Of a stretch of 64,000 bases of DNA, positions 3,491-55,179 are shown piece after piece. Source of the DNA: Podarcis erhardii. Lineage: Eukaryota. The DNA is taken from the NCBI GenBank assembly GCA_964252035.1, contig OZ176205.1; one strand, given 5' to 3'. The notes under the pieces are model-generated. The model made no database searches and was not told the DNA's origin. It was given only the letters and a program-made list of their open reading frames with translations. The position numbers and the translations under genes are program-made. Numbering within the stretch: the first letter of the stretch is position 1; the number at the start of each line of letters is the position of its first letter.

Positions 3491-5235
3491 GTGTGGCAGC
3501 TACCTTGGGTTAAGCAGACTTATAAAACTGCATTTCCCTAAAGTGTGGATAGTAATGGATTCAGGAGCTATTTTGGCATGCAAGTGGTATATAAATAAAG
3601 GAAGTCACCCTAGGTATCTTCATATGTTGTGTGCTGATGAAAGAGTCCCAGAGCCCAGTGAGTCCCTCAGCAGCAAACAGTGTTTGTGGGGAACTGTTAG
3701 CATTCATTTGCTTTCTAATCTATGCCATGAATGCTCTGCTGCTTGCAGACACTCTTGGGTTACCTGTCTGGCCTCAGCTCAGGGATGTAATAAGAAGTGG
3801 GCTTACTTGCAAGCTGTTCCTTGTGAATTGTGGTGATTCACAGGAGACCTCAGGGAAGGCTGCTTGCCAGCAATTAATGCCCTGAAGACTCGGAGGGCAT
3901 CCTCCCATAGCAACCTTGCTCTGCCAGAGCTCTGTGCCTGTATGGGAGGGGGGAGTGGTGGAGCGTAGGCAGGCAGATTGGAGTACAAAGCAATTTAATT
4001 AGCTGTGAGCCTTCTTGTATGTCTCTTAGGGAAGGAGTACTTGGCAGATTGAATGCTCACTCCCACTACCCTTTTGTGAGGCCTTTTGCCAGGACTACTT
4101 CTCAAGATCGTGGTGGATGGAATAGTGAAACTGCTGAAGAAGAAGAAACCATGCAGACCTTGCCTTCCTGTGCTGGGACAGAATTTGTATCAACTCCAAT
4201 ATCCTAAAAGAATGACTTTGATTGTGTAGGCTGCAAATATTCCATACCATTAAATTCTGTACCATAAGAACTAAAATGCTGGATAAATTATGGGCTGGGT
4301 GGATTTATAAATCAAGGTAGGGATGTTCATGATTTGCTGCCTGCATCAGTGGGGCATCATGTCACACTGCAGGGTGCTTGGTAGGTCTGATGTGGTACCA
4401 TATAGTTCCACTTTTAATCTAGCAGGCACTCAGCATGAACTGACCTTAGCACTCCAGAGGCCCCTTGAACCCCTGTCCATGTAACACAGGGGAGAGGTGG
4501 TGGCCAGATGAAAGCAGAATGTCTGAGCTTACAGGCACAGTACTGGCCAGGCCAAAAGTTGTCCTGGTGTTATTCCTGGTTGACTAGCACACCTTCCAGT
4601 GCTAAATAGCAGGATGTCACAGAATCCTTTGCATTAGACATCCCCGCAGCATCCTGTGTCTTTTGTGTGAGATGTCAGAAGTCTTGTGTGCTGCTAAGCA
4701 CTTCATCACATGCCATTTCTGACCAAGCAGGTGCACTGCCCAAAATGAGACGTTCCTGTTGCTAGGCAACTGCCCAGTGTTGTCCCCTCCTCACTCTGTT
4801 TCCCTCCCCAAATATCCATGCAGCCAGGACTAAAATGTAATAGCAGTGATGGACCAGCTAATTAGACATGGACGTAATGCTTGGCCCCCTGTGCTTTAAC
4901 ATTATGGAACATGAAGCATGCGCCCAGGAGACACGGTGCTAAGTGAAGGGATGTGAAGACAAAGGCTTTCTTTTGCATGAGTCACCAGCTATCTACCAAC
5001 AGTCTATCCAGTACTATAGGCAAACACCTCCACCTGAAAGATACTCTTTCCTGCCAAGGGGCAATAACACAACACCACCAGGCGTTCTGCAGATAGCAAT
5101 GTAAACAATTCATATGCCTGGTACATGTTTTGCTGTTGCTGACCTCCACACATTTATACATGCATTATACCTTTGTACATGTGTACTCTAGGCAAAAACC
5201 TGCCTTTTGCAACATGTCTGAGTGACTTGCTCCAC

Positions 5236-23033: not shown

Positions 23034-23148
23034 ATGGGACTGCTGGTGTACATGCGTAACCTGCTACTAGCCCTCTGTCTCTTTCTGGTGCTGGGCTTTC
23101 TCTATTATTCAGCTTGGAAACTGCATCTTCTTCAATGGGAGGATTCAA
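23034..23148 (+). CDS. ST3GAL3: ST3GAL3 first coding exon (exon 23004-23148), cytoplasmic tail and transmembrane anchor
   Basis: Translates as MGLLVYMRNLLLALCLFLVLGFLYYSAWKLHLLQWEDS, nearly identical to the mammalian ST3GAL3 N-terminus as I recall it. Acceptor tttcccccag|G at 23003/23004 is 30 nt before the ATG. Donor A|gtaagt at 23148/23149 is phase 1. An extra in-frame ATG at 23028 has weak Kozak context; the ATG at 23034 (aagATGg) is strong. Confidence 0.97.
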
Positions 23149-31294: not shown

Positions 31295-32812
31295 CAGGTG
31301 AAACTCAGAAAATTAGAATATCGTGGAAAAGTTCATTTATTTCAGTAATTCAACTTAAAAGGTGAAACTAATATATGAGATAGATTCATGACATGCAAAA
31401 CAATATATGTCAAGCCCTTTGTTTGTTATAATTGTGATATTATGGCATACAGCTGATGAAAACCCCAAATTAACAATCTCAGAAAATTAGAATATTAAAT
31501 GAAATCAGCAAAACAAGGATTGCAAATAGAGCAATATTGGACCTCTGAGAAGTAGAAGCATGCATATGTACTCAGTACTTGGTTTTGCATCAATTACTGC
31601 CTCAATGCGGCGTGGCATGGATGCTATCAGCCTGTGGCACTGCTGCGGTGTTATGGAAGACCAGGAAGCTTCAATAGCAGCCTTCAGCTCTTCTGCATTG
31701 CTCGGTCTCATGTCTCTCATCTTTCTTTTGGTAATGTCCCATAGATTCTCTATGGGATTCAGGTCAGGCGAGTTTGCTGGCCATTCAAGCACAGTAATCC
31801 CATGGACATTGAACCAGGTTTTGGTACTTTTGGCAGTGTGGGCAGGTGCCAAGTCCTGCTGGAAAATGAAGTCAGCATCCCTATAAAATAAAGCTTGTCT
31901 GTGGAAGGAAGCATGAAGTGCTCCAAAATCTCCTGGTAGATGGCTGCGTTGATCCTGGACTTAATGGAGCACAGTGGAACAACACCAGCTGATGACATGG
32001 CTCCCCAAATCAACACAGACTGTGGAAACTTCACACTGGACTTCAAGCATCTGGCATTGTGTGCCTCCCCATTCTTCCTCCAGACTCTGGGTCCTTGGTT
32101 TCCAAATGAGATGCAAAAGTTGCTCTCATCAGAAAAGAGGACTTGGGACCACTGAGCAACAGACCAGTTCTTTTTTTCTTCAGCCCAGGTAAGACACTTC
32201 TGACGTTTCTTGACAAGAGGAATACGACATTTGAAGCCCATCTCCAGGATCCGTCTGTGTGTGGTGGCTCTTGATGCACTAACTCCAGCCTTAGTCCACT
32301 CCTTGTGAAAGTCCCCAACACTTTTGAACAGTCTTTTCCTGACAATTCTCTCCAGGCTGTGGTCATCCCTGCTGCTTGTGCACCTTTTTCTTCCACACTT
32401 TTCCCTTCTGCATAACTTTCCATTAATGTGCTTCGATACAGCACTTTGGAAACATCCAACTTCTTCTGCAATTACCTTTTGAGGCTTTCCCTCCTTATGG
32501 AGGGTCTCAGTGATGACTTTCTGCACAACTGTCAGGTCAGCAGCTTTCCCCATTTAAAGGCTCAGGAACCCATTGCAGGTGTTATGGATTGAATAGCTAC
32601 TGCACCTTTTCACAATATTCTAATTTTCTGAGATTGTTAATTTGGGGTTTTCATCAGCTGTACCCCATAATCATCACAATAACAAATAAAGGCTTGACAT
32701 ATCTTGCTTTGCATGTCATGAGTCTATCTCATATATTAGTTTCACCTTTTAAGTTGAATTACTGAAATAAATGAAGTTTTCCACGATATTCTGATTTTCC
32801 GAGTTTCACCTG
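31295..32812 (-). mobile_element. Tc1-like DNA transposon (IR/DR type), full length, TA TSD
   Basis: About 200-bp inverted terminal repeats (CAGGTGAAACTC...; 31295-31496 and 32614-32812) are flanked by TA. Each ITR carries the direct repeat CTCRGAAAAT(T/C)AGAATAT at both ends. A transposase is encoded on the - strand. Confidence 0.97.
31572..32553 (-). pseudogene. Tc1 transposase (DD34E-type), disrupted
   Basis: Contains MGKAADLTVVQK..., VLFSDESNF and WPANSPDLNPIENLW motifs. There is a frameshift at an ATAAA duplication near 31883-31892, an apparent short in-frame deletion (PLVKKRQK) and a small deletion just before the stop. Confidence 0.93.
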
Positions 32813-34680: not shown

Positions 34681-36442
34681 TCCTAAAGGAAGAACAAAGA
34701 AACAGTGGGGTGACTCAGAGGAGAAGATGGTGAAATGCAAACAGGGGACACAGAAAGGGCTGAACTCCTCAATGCCTTCTTTGCCTCAGTCTTCTCCGAT
34801 AAAGAAAACAATGCCCGACCTGAAGAATTTGGAGCAAATGATTCAGCAGACGAAACACAGCCCAGAATAACTAAGGAGATAGTACAAGAATACTTGGCTA
34901 GTTTAGATGTATTCAAGTCTCCAGGGCCAGATGAACTGCATCCAAGAGTATTAAAAGAACTGGCAGGTGTGATCTCAGAAACACTGGCAGTCATCTTTGA
35001 GAATTCCTGGAGAACAGGCGAAGTCCCGGCAGACTGGAGGAGGGCAAATGTTGTCCCTATTTTCAAAAAGGGGAAAAGAGAGGACCCAAATAATTACCGC
35101 CCAGTCAGTCTGACATCAATACCAGGGAAGATTCTGGAGCAGATCATTAAGCAAACAGTCTGTGAGCACCTAGAAAGGAATGCTGTGATCACCAATAGTC
35201 AGCATGGATTTCTGAAAAATAAGTCATGTCAGACTAACCTGATCTCGTTTTTTGACAGAATTACAAGCCTGGTAGATGAAGGGAACGCAGTGGATGTAGC
35301 CTACCTTGATTTCAGCAAGGCATTTGACAAGGTGCCCCATGATATTCTTGTAAAGAAGCTGGTAAAATGCAGTCTTGACTATGCTACCACTCAGTGGATT
35401 TGTAACTGGCCGACTGACCGAACCCAAAGGGTGCTCATCAATGGTTCCTGTTCATCCTGGAGAAGAGGGACTAGTGGGGTGCCACAGGGTTCTGTCTTGG
35501 GCCCGGTCTTATTCAACATCTTTATCAACGACTTGGATGATGGACTCAAGGGCATCCTGATCAAATTTGCAGATGACACCAAACTGGGAGGGGTGGCTAA
35601 CACCCCAGTGGACAGGATCACACTTCAAAACGACCTTGACAGATTAGAGAACTGGGCCAAAACAAACAAGATGAATTTTAACAGGGAGAAATGTAAAGTA
35701 TTGCACTTGGGGGGGGGGGGGGAAATGAGAGGCACAAATACAAGATGGGTGACACCTGGCTTGAGAGCAGTACATGTGAAAAGGATCTAGGAGTCTTGGT
35801 TGACCACAAACTTGACATGAGCCAACAGTGTGACGCGGCAGCTAAAAAAGCCAATGCAATTCTGGGCTGCATCAATAGCATCTAGATCAAGGGAAGTAAT
35901 AGTCCCACTGTATTCTGCTCTGGTCAGACCTCACCTGGAGTACTGTGTCCAGTTCTGGGCACCACAGTTCAATAAGGACACTGACAAACTGGAACGTGTC
36001 CAGAGGAGGGCAACCAAAATGGTCAAAGGCCTGGAAACGATGCCTTATGAGGAACGGCTAAGGGAGCTGGGCATGTTTAGCCTGGAGAAGAGGAGGTTAA
36101 GGGGTGATATGATAGCCATGTTCAAATATATAAAAGGATGTCACATAGAGGAGGGAGAAAGGTTGTTTTCTGCTGCTCCAGAGAAGCGGACACGGAGCAA
36201 TGGTTCCAAACTACAAGAAAGAAGATTCCACCTAAACATTAGGAAGAACTTCCTGACAGTAAGAGCTGTTTGACAGTGGAATTTGCTGCCAAGGAGTGTG
36301 GTGGAGTCTCCTTCTTTGGAGGTCTTTAAGCAGAGGCTTGACAACCATATGTCAGGAGTGCTCTGGTGGTGTTTCCTGCTTGGCAGGGGGTTGGACTCGA
36401 TGGCCCTTGTGGTCTCTTCCAACTCTATGATTCTATGATTCT
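34681..36442 (+). mobile_element. CR1 LINE, 5'-truncated, with 3' (ATTCTATG)n tail
   Basis: ORF2 RT domain (SPGPDELHPRVLKEL, YLDFSKAFDKV, GVPQGSVLGP, KFADDTKL), a CR1-type C-terminus ([14 protein letters not shown]) and terminal ctatgattctatgattct. The 5' boundary is approximate. Confidence 0.96.
34735..36273 (+). pseudogene. CR1 ORF2 remnant (reverse transcriptase)
   Basis: A 351-aa open frame (34735-35790) covers the RT core. The frame shifts at a 14-G run (35709-35722) and again near 35880, then ends at an early TGA at 36271-36273. The endonuclease is missing. Confidence 0.9.
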
Positions 36443-50329: not shown

Positions 50330-50667
50330 GTACAACAATCCCTCCCCCTCCCTCCCCCCCTCATAAAAAGATTGCCATTTAATTTATATGTGACAGCCAT
50401 GTTGGGAGGCAGAGAAGAGGCTGTCAAGCCTAGTTCAGGATTACCCTTCAAAGTAGCCCTTGAAAGAAATCTAGCAGATGAACTCTCTGTCTTCAAAAGG
50501 GAATTACTTAAAATTACTTTGTGTGCCATGGCAACTCAAAGCCACTTAGAGTGGACTTCTTGTTTCCTTGTGTTGCATTTTTAGTGCTTCAGTTGTGAAT
50601 TTGACTAAACATTTGTTCTAAGTGGCGGACACATTAGATGCAGGGTGATACTATAGGACTTTATTGC

Positions 50668-50804
50668 AGCGATAGGGAGCCTGCTGCCTCTGGATATTAC
50701 TGGACTTCAGCTTCCATTAGCCCTATCTAGCATGATCAATGGTCAGAGATGATGGAAGTTTAGTTCAACAAAATCTAGAGTGCCACAGTTTCCCCATTCC
50801 TGCT
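50668..50804. mobile_element. common squamate short non-autonomous DNA element (degenerate)
   Basis: Contains ggacttcagcttccattagccct and gatgatggaagtttagttcaacaaaatctagagtgccacagtttccccattcctg. It is related to the host element at about 55180-55690. Confidence 0.5.
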
Positions 50805-51406
50805 TTATTGTGTTCCTTGCCACCTCTCCACATTCCTCAAATCAGCTGACCTGTTGATTGCACAACAGATCCACATTGCACAAATGGTATTCCTCCATTC
50901 CCAGATGATATCCTACATTGTCATGCCATTTGGTGGAAAGGCTGGATATAAATTTAACTAAGGATAATGATAATATTTTTTTCTAGGCAGAGGGTTTAGT
51001 TGCATCTAATGTATAAATACACATGCACACCTTACCACCACCCCAACCATACAGTGCATTGTACACTAATTGGAGAAAAATACTCTTCCAAAAGAGAGTT
51101 CAGTTAAATAGATCACTTCTCCATTTTTGGGAAGAAATCCTGTTGAGGAATCTGTTCAGGAGGGAAGATGATGGTATGCAAAGTTTTAAATGCAATGTTT
51201 GTTGAGACATACGGAGTTTATGAGCCAGGGAGAAACTTCATTTTGCTTCTCGATTGTGACTGAAATTTATAATCTTACAAATTGGAGCCTAAAAACAAAT
51301 TCTGTCCCTTGGGCCACTTCAGGTCACCTATGAACCAGCACTGCATAGATTGTACCTTCGGAGTGCTATTACTAGGATGGATCAGTGTTCTGGCTCATAG
51401 CTTTCT

Positions 51407-53253
51407 TTTTTTTTTTTAAATAATTTTTATTGGGTTTTTACATTTTATAACAACAGACACACACACAAAGACAAAGACAGACAAACACACAAATACAATT
51501 ACATACCCTAAGTTTCTTTACCCACTTTCGTTGACTTCCCCCCACCCCCTCCTCTTACATCCCAATTCCACAATTAATTCAGCAAGTTCTTGTCTAACCT
51601 CTTAAAGATATTCACATTGCTTTTAAAAATTAAATTCTTTTGTTTATCTATATTCAACTATCCAATTCTCTTATAATCATTAATTTCTTTTTTTTTAAGG
51701 TCGATCTAACTTCCCCTTCACAAATTTTCCCTTTATTATATTAATTATAGGTCACATTGACCAAGTAAAACAAAACATAACATTTTATAATTCTATTCTC
51801 TCCCCCCCCTGCCCCGGTTTCTGTCCCTTCCTAGACAAATGTCCAGAAAACAAACAAAAAATATTTCTAGCCCGGATTCCTCACGTCCGAGGCGTCTGAT
51901 TCTCTGTCAGTCCCTCTCTGCCAGCTATATTGGTAGTCCTCTTTGATGGTCCTAAGACCCCGAAGGAGTTCAGTCAGAGTCAGATCATATTTTCTTTCAT
52001 TCAGAATGTTGAAGAGTGTTTGCTGCGAAAGGCCATCTAGTTTTCCATACTCAAGAGAAAAGTCCCAATCATATTGCTTTGTTCTTTCTAGTTTTAATAT
52101 TCCAAGTACTCCAGGGGCTTCTCTCTTCTTCTTTCTCATCTTTCGCAGGTCTGTAATCCAGAAGTCTTCTTGCTCATACTCTAACGCTGCAGATTCCTGG
52201 TTGATGTTTTCCACTTGTAGTGTCTGAACTCCTTCTTTTTTCTCTGTCAATTCCAAAGGCATCTCTTCCTGCTCAGCTGCAGAATTTTTATCATACATCT
52301 CCTTTGTGCATTCAGCAGAGTTGTTTGTTTCAGGATTCAAGGTCATAAAAACTTTACTCAGAGCCATACTCTGCTCCTGCAGGATTCCCACGAGAAAGAA
52401 CATTTTTTCTATCTCCGCCAGTAATTTTCCCTCTGCAGCCATTGTAATGTCGCTAATTCCCCCTAGGGGGCTTTCAGTTATTTAGTAGTCCTTTTCCAAT
52501 AATCTGTTACTTTGTTATTATCAATACTTTGTTTCCAATCGCCTCAGTCCAAATGTATCAGCTTTAATTCCAAGAGTTATTAAATAGCAAAATTCTTTAC
52601 TTTGTCCGCCCGTTTGACAGCTTCTTTGACAGCTGTCAAACTCCTTTCACTTCTTCCTCCGGGACCCAAATAGGACACTCCCGGGTTTTTTGGGGGGGAT
52701 ACACACAAAGTTCCAAATTCCCTTTCTCTCCAGCACAAAAATCTTGTTCTATCAAATTTGTGAGAAACTTTTAAATCATCAAAACAGTATTCATTCCGCC
52801 TTAATTCTCCGTTCCTTGCTTTGAAACGTCTATAAGTAGAGGGGGTGCGGACTTCCCTTTAACACATCCCCCGATCGTGCCGAATTCACAGGATAAAATT
52901 TTTAAAGTCCAAATTCCACTACTCACGGGTCCTTTGTTATCCAGTCCAAATTTTGGGAAGAAAGTCAGCGCTCTCCGGCCATGGCTTGCGGCTTCGCTCT
53001 ACTGAGGTAGCGGTCTACTCTCAGCACCACGCCACTCTCCGTACCCTCTCCGCAGCCTTTAAAAAGGCTCTTCGTGGGTCGGGGAGGGCGCTTAAGGTGC
53101 CCACCGAGTCACCAAGTCCGCAGGCTTCCGCGCCTGCGGTTTCTGAGGGTCCCCGTGTCGCCGGCACGGCAAGACCCGTCCTCAGCAGAGCCGATTCCCT
53201 CCGGAGCTCGGAGGGAATCCGCCATTAGCCGTTCGCGCTAACCCGGAAGTCCC
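51407..53253 (-). mobile_element. full-length non-autonomous L1-type (HAL1-like) retroposon with 17-bp TSD
   Basis: TSD CTGGCTCATAGCTTTCT occurs at 51390-51406 and 53254-53270. The poly(A) reads as a T-run at about 51406-51417 and is preceded on the - strand by AATAAA. The 5' end begins GGGACTTCCGG and is CpG-rich. The 3' UTR has G-rich tracts. There is a single 191-aa ORF and no RT or endonuclease. Confidence 0.88.
51867..52442 (-). CDS. 191-aa ORF of unknown function inside the retroposon
   Basis: Uninterrupted ATG-to-stop ORF (MAAEGKLLAEIEKMFF...DVRNPG) placed between the long 5' UTR and the 3' UTR of the element. It has an acidic N-half and a basic RKMRKKKR patch. No homologue is recognisable by eye. 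Confidence 0.6.
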   Translation of the reverse strand: MAAEGKLLAEIEKMFFLVGILQEQSMALSKVFMTLNPETNNSAECTKEMYDKNSAAEQEEMPLELTEKKEGVQTLQVENINQESAALEYEQEDFWITDLRKMRKKKREAPGVLGILKLERTKQYDWDFSLEYGKLDGLSQQTLFNILNERKYDLTLTELLRGLRTIKEDYQYSWQRGTDRESDASDVRNPG

Positions 53254-55179
53254 CTGGCTCATAGCTTTCTACCACAACACAAGTTCTGATATTCTGTTAA
53301 GGGCACGTACTCTGCAATGTGCGTTTCTGGAAGAGGAAGGGTAGGAAATTTCTCATTGTCCAGATTTTGTTGCAGTCCTAAAGAGGTGTGATGCCCCCAA
53401 TAAAAGAAGCTTTGTTCCCCTCCCCTTTAAAAGCTAGCCTCATCCCACCCTCTCCCATTAAAAGCTGCTTTCAGGATTTCTAATTGTACTCTGGGAAGAA
53501 TGTTTGCTGCCTTCCAACATGGTCCCAGGCTCCTGCCTGCACAATAATCAAGCACAGCTTGCTGCCTAACACTAATAGCAAAGCCTTGTCGAAAGAGTGC
53601 TGAGTTACTAACCTCAAATGGGGGTCTTTTAAAAAGCACAGGCTGCTTCCTGCTCTTCTTGCTTCATTCTTGAGAATGTGATCCTAAAGGCTGGTTGGGC
53701 AAGGGTGCATGATCTTGCTCACAGATTGCCCAGCTTTGCTTGAAGAAGGGAAATATCGTTAAGTTTTAAAGAGATCCAATTTAGTACTTGCAGATACTGT
53801 TGCGCTAGTATCTCTGTGTGGGGCAAACATCATGAGGTGTTAGAAGACAATAAAAAAAGGGGGGGGGGGAATCAGTTCCTCTGTCTGCCTCAACAAAATT
53901 TGATTATTCAGTCTTTATACTAAAGTAGCCAGCCATGGAGAGAAAGCTTGGAACCGGTTACAGTTTGTTAAACAGCTGCATGTTAAAGTTATTTAATATT
54001 AAGAGCTTTGGCTTTTTTGTGCTTCGAGCTCTGCCTACTAGAGAAAAAGAAGCTATGTAATAAGTTTGAGTTGTGTGGTCTGTTGCTGGACTGAGGGATA
54101 GCTTTCCTTGTTAAAACAGGAAGGAGAGAGAGAAAATCCACATCTCTTGTGCCTCTGTCATCTCTCCCATCACATCTTGCTGCAAACCTGGGAACAGGCA
54201 AAGCTAAGAGAGAACCTGTCGCTATTCCACGCCCAACCATTCCTAGTAGGTACTGCTTCAGGTTGGGGAGAAAAAGGGGGGAAATCAAATGATACACACA
54301 CTAAAGAAAAAATATTCTTCAAGGGTTGGAAACTTGCAATAGGTGACTTGGGAGTGGGTAGGTGCTTCCTCTGCTCATTGGGGCTCGATTTGGATGATTT
54401 TAAAGTTAAATTCCAGCTGTGTAGTTTTCCAATTATATGAATACATAATAACTCAGAATTTGCTCATATTTCATGTTTACATCTATTTTTTCCTACCCTC
54501 GTTTTCCGTTTTTACCTTCTGATTGATTCCTAGATTCTAAAAAACTGAAACCAGAAATTTCTGTGACTGTATGAAATCCCTTCTACATTCATGACACCAG
54601 ATGTTTTAAATGGAAAATTGCTTTAAACAACTTATAATGTCTTCTGTGTTCTTAAAAGTAAACTTAAAATAGGGGATCTGAGGGTGCATATTCATCTTTG
54701 AAAAAGACCTTGCTATCTGAAAAAACACCTGTTTCTACATGAACCAATCCATGTGTTATGATATGCATCGGAGGCTCTTTACTAGCAGGCCGTACAATCA
54801 GAGATTAGGCAGGTAGCAACCACAGAACTGTTACTTTCAGTGGTGCTGTCCTGGTTCTGGAATCTCTTGCTGTGACTGCTCACTTGGTACCTGTTGTGAT
54901 AAGTCCTTTTTATTTGCCCAGTCATTTAAGTTGTTTTTAGCAGCTATTTTATTTTAATTTTTGTTTTACTCTGTTTTGTGTGACAATTTTTACTGGCTTG
55001 CTATTTTTCTGTAGATTTTTATACACTGTTTTGAAAACTTTGATTTAAAAGCTGCTTCGGAAAAAGTTGAATTAATTAGCATGCATTTGGTTTAATCACA
55101 TGCAGGATACTGCATGCTTGCCCCAATCTGAAAAAAGAAACGTGATGCACCAGGGCCTTGACAAGGTGCCATATCTATC

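Follow-up and report, generated by a model that had tools for sequence, protein, structure and literature searches.

A 64,000-nt stretch of the genome of the lizard Podarcis erhardii (assembly GCA_964252035.1, contig OZ176205.1; in the following, the window) contains an insert of 1,847 nt on the minus strand (51407–53253), placed between perfect 17-bp target-site duplications. The insert is very probably a single recent insertion, not fixed, that belongs to a family of non-autonomous poly(A) retroposons present in lizards at high copy number, and the retroposon most likely borrows its copying enzyme from LINE-1 (L1), a long interspersed element (LINE). In the reading that best fits the evidence given below, the family is active and non-autonomous, is transcribed by RNA polymerase II (Pol II) and is copied by L1-type target-primed reverse transcription. 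An original prediction, made from the sequence alone, had described the element as a HAL1-like retroposon, inserted antisense in an intron of ST3GAL3.

The duplication consists of the 17-mer CTGGCTCATAGCTTTCT, which is found twice on the plus strand, once beside the poly(A) end of the insert (51390–51406) and once beside its 5' end (53254–53270), with zero mismatches and 1,864 nt apart. Contigs from public sequencing runs carry the same site without the insert and retain one copy of the 17-mer. X1 is a DNA run of organism A, the same species, and its flanks are nearly indistinguishable from the window. Its record 3 (2,116 nt, depth 100, equal to the flank level) joins 51389 to 53254 at its own positions 1993/1992, with positions 1993–2116 on 51266–51389 and positions 947–1992 on 53254–54300. 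The contig lacks exactly the element and one copy of the 17-mer. The same empty-site join (positions 5203/5202) is present in record 16 of run X4 (8,705 nt) from organism B, a sister species, whose flanks diverge from the window by approximately 1–2%. The empty-site contigs in both organisms therefore indicate a recent insertion that is not fixed. Within its own species at least one allele lacks it, and it is either younger than the split between the close sister species or has been segregating since. If X1 comes from the animal that was assembled, that animal is heterozygous; if it comes from a different one, the insertion is unfixed all the same. The original prediction had suggested a young, possibly active family and a comparison of the orthologous site in related lizards; the comparison yields a precise empty site in the sister species as well as in the same species, and the insertion polymorphism supports the proposed youth. 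Activity of the family is very recent and probably continues.

A second line of evidence is the abundance of related sequence. Public runs were compared as contigs, and depth in X1 is about 95–114 in the flanks and 270,000–680,000 inside 51448–53281, the latter being summed contig depth, which is explicitly not a copy number. Both the step up and the step down in depth fall in the bins that hold the two element ends. In total, 6,163 contigs of X1 match the element: 1,861 at ≥99% likeness, 1,983 at 95–99%, 1,510 at 90–95% and 809 below 90%. Copies in organism A are very numerous, and many are of very recent origin. A repetitive family rather than a single-copy sequence, as had been anticipated, is thus borne out by the number of contigs and by a depth thousands of times that of the flanks; inside the window, blastn finds no second copy. 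Deletion derivatives of the family also exist: individual contigs of organisms A, B and K lack 67–691 nt internally (joints across 51858–52962). One joins 51922 to 52614 and has lost most of the open reading frame (ORF), and three contigs of organism K join 52451 to 52613.

The copy number bears directly on the nearest conventional explanation, a processed pseudogene or retrogene, in which a spliced host mRNA with an extended 5' untranslated region (UTR) was copied once by L1. Such a retrocopy would explain the poly(A) and the 17-bp duplication, as well as a start at an ETS motif like that of a housekeeping transcription start site, and the N-terminal 41 residues of the encoded protein weakly resemble residues 1–41 of neuroguidin (E = 0.39). 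The thousands-fold excess depth and the graded identity spectrum of the contigs contradict it, as does the absence of any named or NCBI-sourced protein among the relatives of the encoded protein. A match to a spliced host mRNA had been named in advance as an outcome that would speak against a retroposon; protein searches find no annotated parent protein, only about 15 unnamed relatives. We consider a processed pseudogene extremely improbable.

Read on the minus strand, the insert begins GGGACTTCCGG and consists of a 5' UTR of 811 nt (52443–53253), an ORF at element positions 812–1387 (51867–52442), and a 3' UTR of 460 nt (51407–51866). The 5' UTR contains five upstream ATGs and a presumed internal Pol II promoter. 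The ATG of the 191-codon ORF stands in the strong context ACAATGG, and its stop codon is TAG. The 3' UTR is AT-rich, with two G-runs and a (TGTC/TGTG)n-like stretch ahead of the AATAAA polyadenylation signal (51426–51431, minus strand; element positions 1823–1828). The signal is followed by 8 nt and a tail of 11 adenines (51407–51417, minus strand), or 12 when the duplication's first A is included. On the plus strand the tail appears as a T-run directly beside the duplication, and it is shorter than a first impression had suggested. The anatomy given by the original prediction—a perfect 17-bp duplication, poly(A) with AATAAA, about 810 nt of 5' UTR, one intact ORF and about 460 nt of 3' UTR—is reproduced by these measurements, and so is its CpG-rich 5' end, with a CpG observed/expected ratio of 1.0 over the first 400 nt.

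The junctions bear on the question of which enzyme made the insertion. The tail of 11 adenines directly abuts the perfect 17-bp duplication, and poly(A) together with a duplication of about 7–20 bp is the mark of an L1-type insertion. The L1 endonuclease has the consensus TTTT/AA; the implied plus-strand nick, 5'-TTTCT/AC-3', agrees with it at 4 of 6 positions, a comparison of a single site with a consensus taken from general knowledge. The enzymes of CR1, L2 and RTE rely on a particular 3' stem or a microsatellite tail for recognition and usually leave short duplications or none, and no poly(A) that depends on AATAAA. On this general knowledge, L1 is preferred over CR1, L2 and RTE as the driver because the element has plain poly(A) after AATAAA and a long duplication. 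Mobilisation by a non-L1 LINE (CR1, L2 or RTE/BovB), all abundant in squamates, would be in keeping with the CR1-like reverse transcriptase fragment in the same window and with the several active LINE clades reported for squamate genomes (PMC5389967). The pure-A tail after AATAAA, the 17-bp duplication and the T-rich/A nick site nevertheless make this origin of the copying enzyme highly unlikely.

The leader of the element has the properties of a CpG island. The CpG observed/expected ratio is 1.0 in the first 200 nt (GC 65%) and 0.98 in the next 200 nt, compared to 0.14–0.19 in the flanks. The first 300 nt (52954–53253, minus strand) form a GC-rich, structured module with a predicted folding energy of −165.4 kcal/mol, against −125.3 ± 5.5 kcal/mol for shuffled sequences (n = 200; z = −7.3), and contain a perfect 11-bp hairpin. 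We take ACTTCCGG at +4 to be an ETS-type motif and ATGGCG at +29 to be a YY1-like motif; the arrangement of the two resembles the leader of human L1, which fixes its own start site. The upstream ATG at element position 29, located within the YY1-like motif, opens an upstream ORF of 38 codons (53112–53225, minus strand) in the same frame as the main ORF. A Pol III origin finds no counterpart in the element: no Rfam family is matched (noise only, E = 0.52) and no tRNA is detected. A short interspersed element (SINE) was considered and rejected, as the element has no Pol III head derived from tRNA, 7SL or 5S and is a 1.85-kb sequence with a coding ORF. A 27-nt hairpin from its 5' end has no match in a metagenome scan.

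The leader is also distributed differently from the rest of the element. In X1, depth at the 5' and 3' ends exceeds that of the ORF by a factor of about 1.5–2. The 5' part (52365–53281) has a depth of 3,500–51,000 in organism B, compared to 100–700 for the ORF and 38 for the flank, and in organism K only the 5' part of the element is found. Because the 5' part outnumbers the ORF in organisms B and K, the leader module is older or more widely shared than the ORF, and it is probably common to other families.

We next turn to the coding capacity. The 191-aa ORF is the only one of more than 60 aa on the element strand, and no stop-free piece of that strand matches any Pfam model, RVT and Exo_endo_phos included; a reverse transcriptase, an endonuclease and an ORF2 remnant are absent, in agreement with the earlier statement that the element lacks a reverse transcriptase. 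The protein itself matches no Pfam and no NCBIfam model, and a search of the ESM Atlas yields sub-threshold, unrelated clusters only (score 0.77). A word search identifies 7 unnamed proteins from Logan assemblies (188–214 aa, 39–50% identity, 100% query coverage). A hidden Markov model (HMM) search of 1.84 billion representative sequences identifies 11 proteins at E ≤ 0.001, all of 129–215 aa except one spurious hit, a longer repeat protein matched by composition. Altogether the family comprises about 15 relatives of 171–215 aa, nearly all with ASD..PG and a stop at the C-terminus, and none of them is a named, annotated or NCBI-sourced protein; a pattern built from the family protein has no match in a metagenome scan.

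The protein consists of an N-terminal heptad helix (residues 2–35), a variable acidic middle, a basic patch (KMRKKKR) and a basic C-terminus. An alignment of 15 sequences has nine invariant residues (M1, G19, L21, Q22, A184, S185, D186, P190 and G191), and in every member the stop follows immediately after PG. The N-terminal consensus is MAAxGKLxAEIERxFFLVGILQEQ and the C-terminal consensus KDYQQNRxRGTERDLxASDVRNPG; the window ORF ends in ASDVRNPG and the stop codon. In relatives P0004–P0007 the main ORF begins 12 codons earlier (MAIPLG...), a stretch that the window contains in frame without an ATG. The helix has a clean 4-3 hydrophobic spacing (L7, I11, M14, V18, L21, L28, F32 and L35), which makes an N-terminal coiled coil plausible; a complex prediction with three copies of residues 1–50 gives a score of 0.03 and makes no call either way on self-association. 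The best match in the PDB is residues 1–41 of neuroguidin (7mq8 chain NC), aligned Met-to-Met with profile positions 1–41, and the weak similarity could mean that the helix came from a host gene or could be a chance resemblance of one amphipathic helix to another. The C-terminus recalls the 2A peptides of viruses and LINEs (D[VI]ExNPG with a proline codon next), but it is not one of them: in the window, DVRNPG is followed by TAG, and the relatives end in NPG, DPG or SPG, always followed by a stop.

These properties determine how far the label HAL1-like applies. The element has no ORF2, belongs to a repetitive family and was inserted in the manner of L1, so that the label holds for its lifestyle. 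It does not hold for the ORF, which is not recognisable as an L1 ORF1p: the traits shared with ORF1p are a coiled-coil-type helix and a basic tail only. In addition, the invariant C-terminal ASD[VL]RxPG followed by a stop is, to our knowledge, no feature of ORF1p. We therefore describe the element as HAL1-like in lifestyle and do not assign it as HAL1.

It might still be a true half-L1 by descent, i.e., an L1 that underwent an internal deletion, with a leader and a trailer derived from the L1 UTRs and a 191-aa ORF that is a shrunken ORF1p without the RNA recognition motif (RRM) and the C-terminal domain (CTD). The heptad-patterned helix and the basic C-terminus are ORF1p-like in kind, and the excess depth of the element ends in X1, as well as a 5' part at 10–100 times the ORF in the sister species, look as if these parts were common to other families. 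Against such a descent, no Transposase_22 or other ORF1p model of Pfam is matched by any of 15 family members (E ≤ 1), no solved structure of L1 ORF1p in the PDB is matched by the family profile (E ≤ 10), no ORF1p or ORF2p is found among the 1.84 billion representatives (E ≤ 0.001), and an RRM-like fold is not predicted, albeit in a low-confidence model. We regard descent from a deleted L1 as doubtful, though the least improbable of the alternatives considered here; it concerns the origin of the element only and is compatible with trans-mobilisation by L1.

For the retroposon as an active parasite of L1, the following cycle can be proposed. The CpG-rich, strongly folded leader would act as an internal Pol II promoter, so that a promoter travels with every full-length copy. 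Polyadenylation of the transcript would occur at AATAAA, and translation would start at the strong Kozak ATG. The small protein, with its coiled-coil-like N-terminus and basic C-terminus, would coat or mark its own RNA, and the resulting ribonucleoprotein would capture the ORF2 protein (ORF2p) of an autonomous L1. The latter would nick TTTCT/AC, prime on the poly(A) tail and reverse-transcribe the RNA into the genome by target-primed reverse transcription.

Several observations weigh against this interpretation. No RNA run on record contains the element. No L1 is found in the 64-kb window by blastn and domain search, the only LINE being the CR1-like fragment, and the abundance of the family is expressed in contig depth, with the restriction stated above. 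The AlphaFold model of the protein is poor, with an overall pLDDT (predicted local distance difference test score) of 46, a confident helix at residues 2–35 only and values below 50 elsewhere. The set of proteins on which conservation is judged is biased, as databases list intact ORFs only. Finally, 7 of the 10 best-supported ORF variants among copies of organism A are non-synonymous and 3 are synonymous. Individual copies look as if they drift neutrally, as in dead-on-arrival decay, with constraint visible between lineages only.

The same neutral-looking variants, together with the contigs whose internal deletions remove the ORF, would fit an ORF that is irrelevant to mobility, open only because the copy is young, in a family that spreads as a non-coding RNA. 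However, relatives at 26–50% identity keep the same start, a similar length, invariant residues at both ends and the stop after PG. This pattern is unexpected without selection and therefore indicates selection on the source lineages, making an irrelevant ORF rather improbable. The opposite extreme, in which the 191-aa protein is an adaptor, acquired separately or arisen de novo, through which the parasite RNA can compete for L1 ORF2p, is speculative, and we give it little weight. Its last eight residues (ASDVRNPG-stop) would then be a docking or termination-linked peptide, and the helix would perhaps come from a host gene such as neuroguidin. The peptide may, for example, hold the finished chain at the ribosome or at its own mRNA, or may bind ORF2p. 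If such an adaptor were real, the family would constitute a new class of LINE parasites, armed with a protein and at present active in a vertebrate.

With respect to the host locus, an exon-like stretch on the plus strand (23034–23148) has an upstream splice acceptor and a GTAAGT donor and encodes a signal-anchor N-terminus, which we take to be that of ST3GAL3. The element lies 28 kb downstream on the opposite strand, a position that agrees with an antisense insertion in an apparent ST3GAL3 intron. The orientation given by the original prediction fits this stretch, while the name of the gene depends on the one presumed N-terminal exon; no exon of the sialyltransferase catalytic domain is found in the 64-kb window. 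Upstream of the insertion, a short high-copy repeat (50662–50923) has a depth of 14,648 in X1, compared to 95, and also occurs in organisms B, C and K. It forms an inverted-repeat hairpin, matches the mir-5408 precursor model below threshold (E = 0.4), and looks like a repeat of the SINE type or of the miniature inverted-repeat transposable element (MITE) type. The CR1-like LINE fragment (34714–36270, plus strand) consists of a 358-aa stop-free stretch (RVT_1, E = 8e−33) and a 150-aa piece that continues it in frame, and is unrelated to the element. A 264-aa ORF (31759–32553, minus strand) with a weak match to a Tc3-type transposase helix-turn-helix domain (E = 0.0066, below the Pfam cut-off) may be a Tc1/mariner remnant. 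A run of N at about 37.9–38.1 kb, part of the 302 N in the window, marks an assembly gap or a masked stretch.

The insertion has practical uses as well as implications for the biology of L1 parasites. It is usable as a presence/absence marker for population work on lizards, and the CpG-island leaders of the family, scattered in introns, could serve as new promoters. The half-L1s of mammals are long dead, such that the question why a LINE parasite keeps a protein gene could not be put to experiment. An abundant, still-inserting family with sharply conserved protein ends makes the need for the protein, and for its last eight residues, in the hijacking of L1 testable. For reptiles, a search of published papers, with Repbase and Dfam outside its scope, found no account of elements that resemble HAL1 or of non-autonomous L1 parasites with a protein gene; so abundant a family probably already has some label in the repeat libraries.

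A comparison with known systems places the element between several classes. With processed pseudogenes it shares the insertion signature, whereas it is repeated thousands-fold and carries its own presumed promoter, and no parent gene was found. SVA-type composite retroposons are described as Pol II-transcribed, mobilised in trans by L1 proteins and present as young polymorphic insertions (PMC3287187). The lizard element likewise has young polymorphic insertions and a transcript with AATAAA and poly(A), presumably made by Pol II; in contrast to the non-coding SVA, which is assembled from SINE-R, VNTR (variable number of tandem repeats) and Alu pieces, it retains a gene for a conserved protein, and its leader is a CpG island with a predicted fold. 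The HeT-A element of Drosophila is a non-LTR (long terminal repeat) retrotransposon that encodes only a Gag/ORF1-type protein and relies on the reverse transcriptase of another element. The lizard element resembles it in this division of labor, but HeT-A is telomere-specific, its Gag is much larger and has zinc knuckles, and the two are not known to be related in sequence. With L1 ORF1p, the 191-aa protein has in common an N-terminal coiled-coil-type helix, a basic C-terminal region and a presumed binding of its RNA in cis, although it is half as long and gives no Transposase_22, RRM or CTD signal. HAL1, finally, is the name for non-autonomous descendants of L1 that code for ORF1p alone and have originated several times (PMC5753468). 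Like the mammalian HAL1s, the lizard element is a non-autonomous, multi-copy sequence of about 2 kb with one ORF, no reverse transcriptase, poly(A) and long duplications; unlike them, it encodes 191 aa without detectable ORF1p domains, and it is probably active now, whereas the mammalian HAL1s are old.

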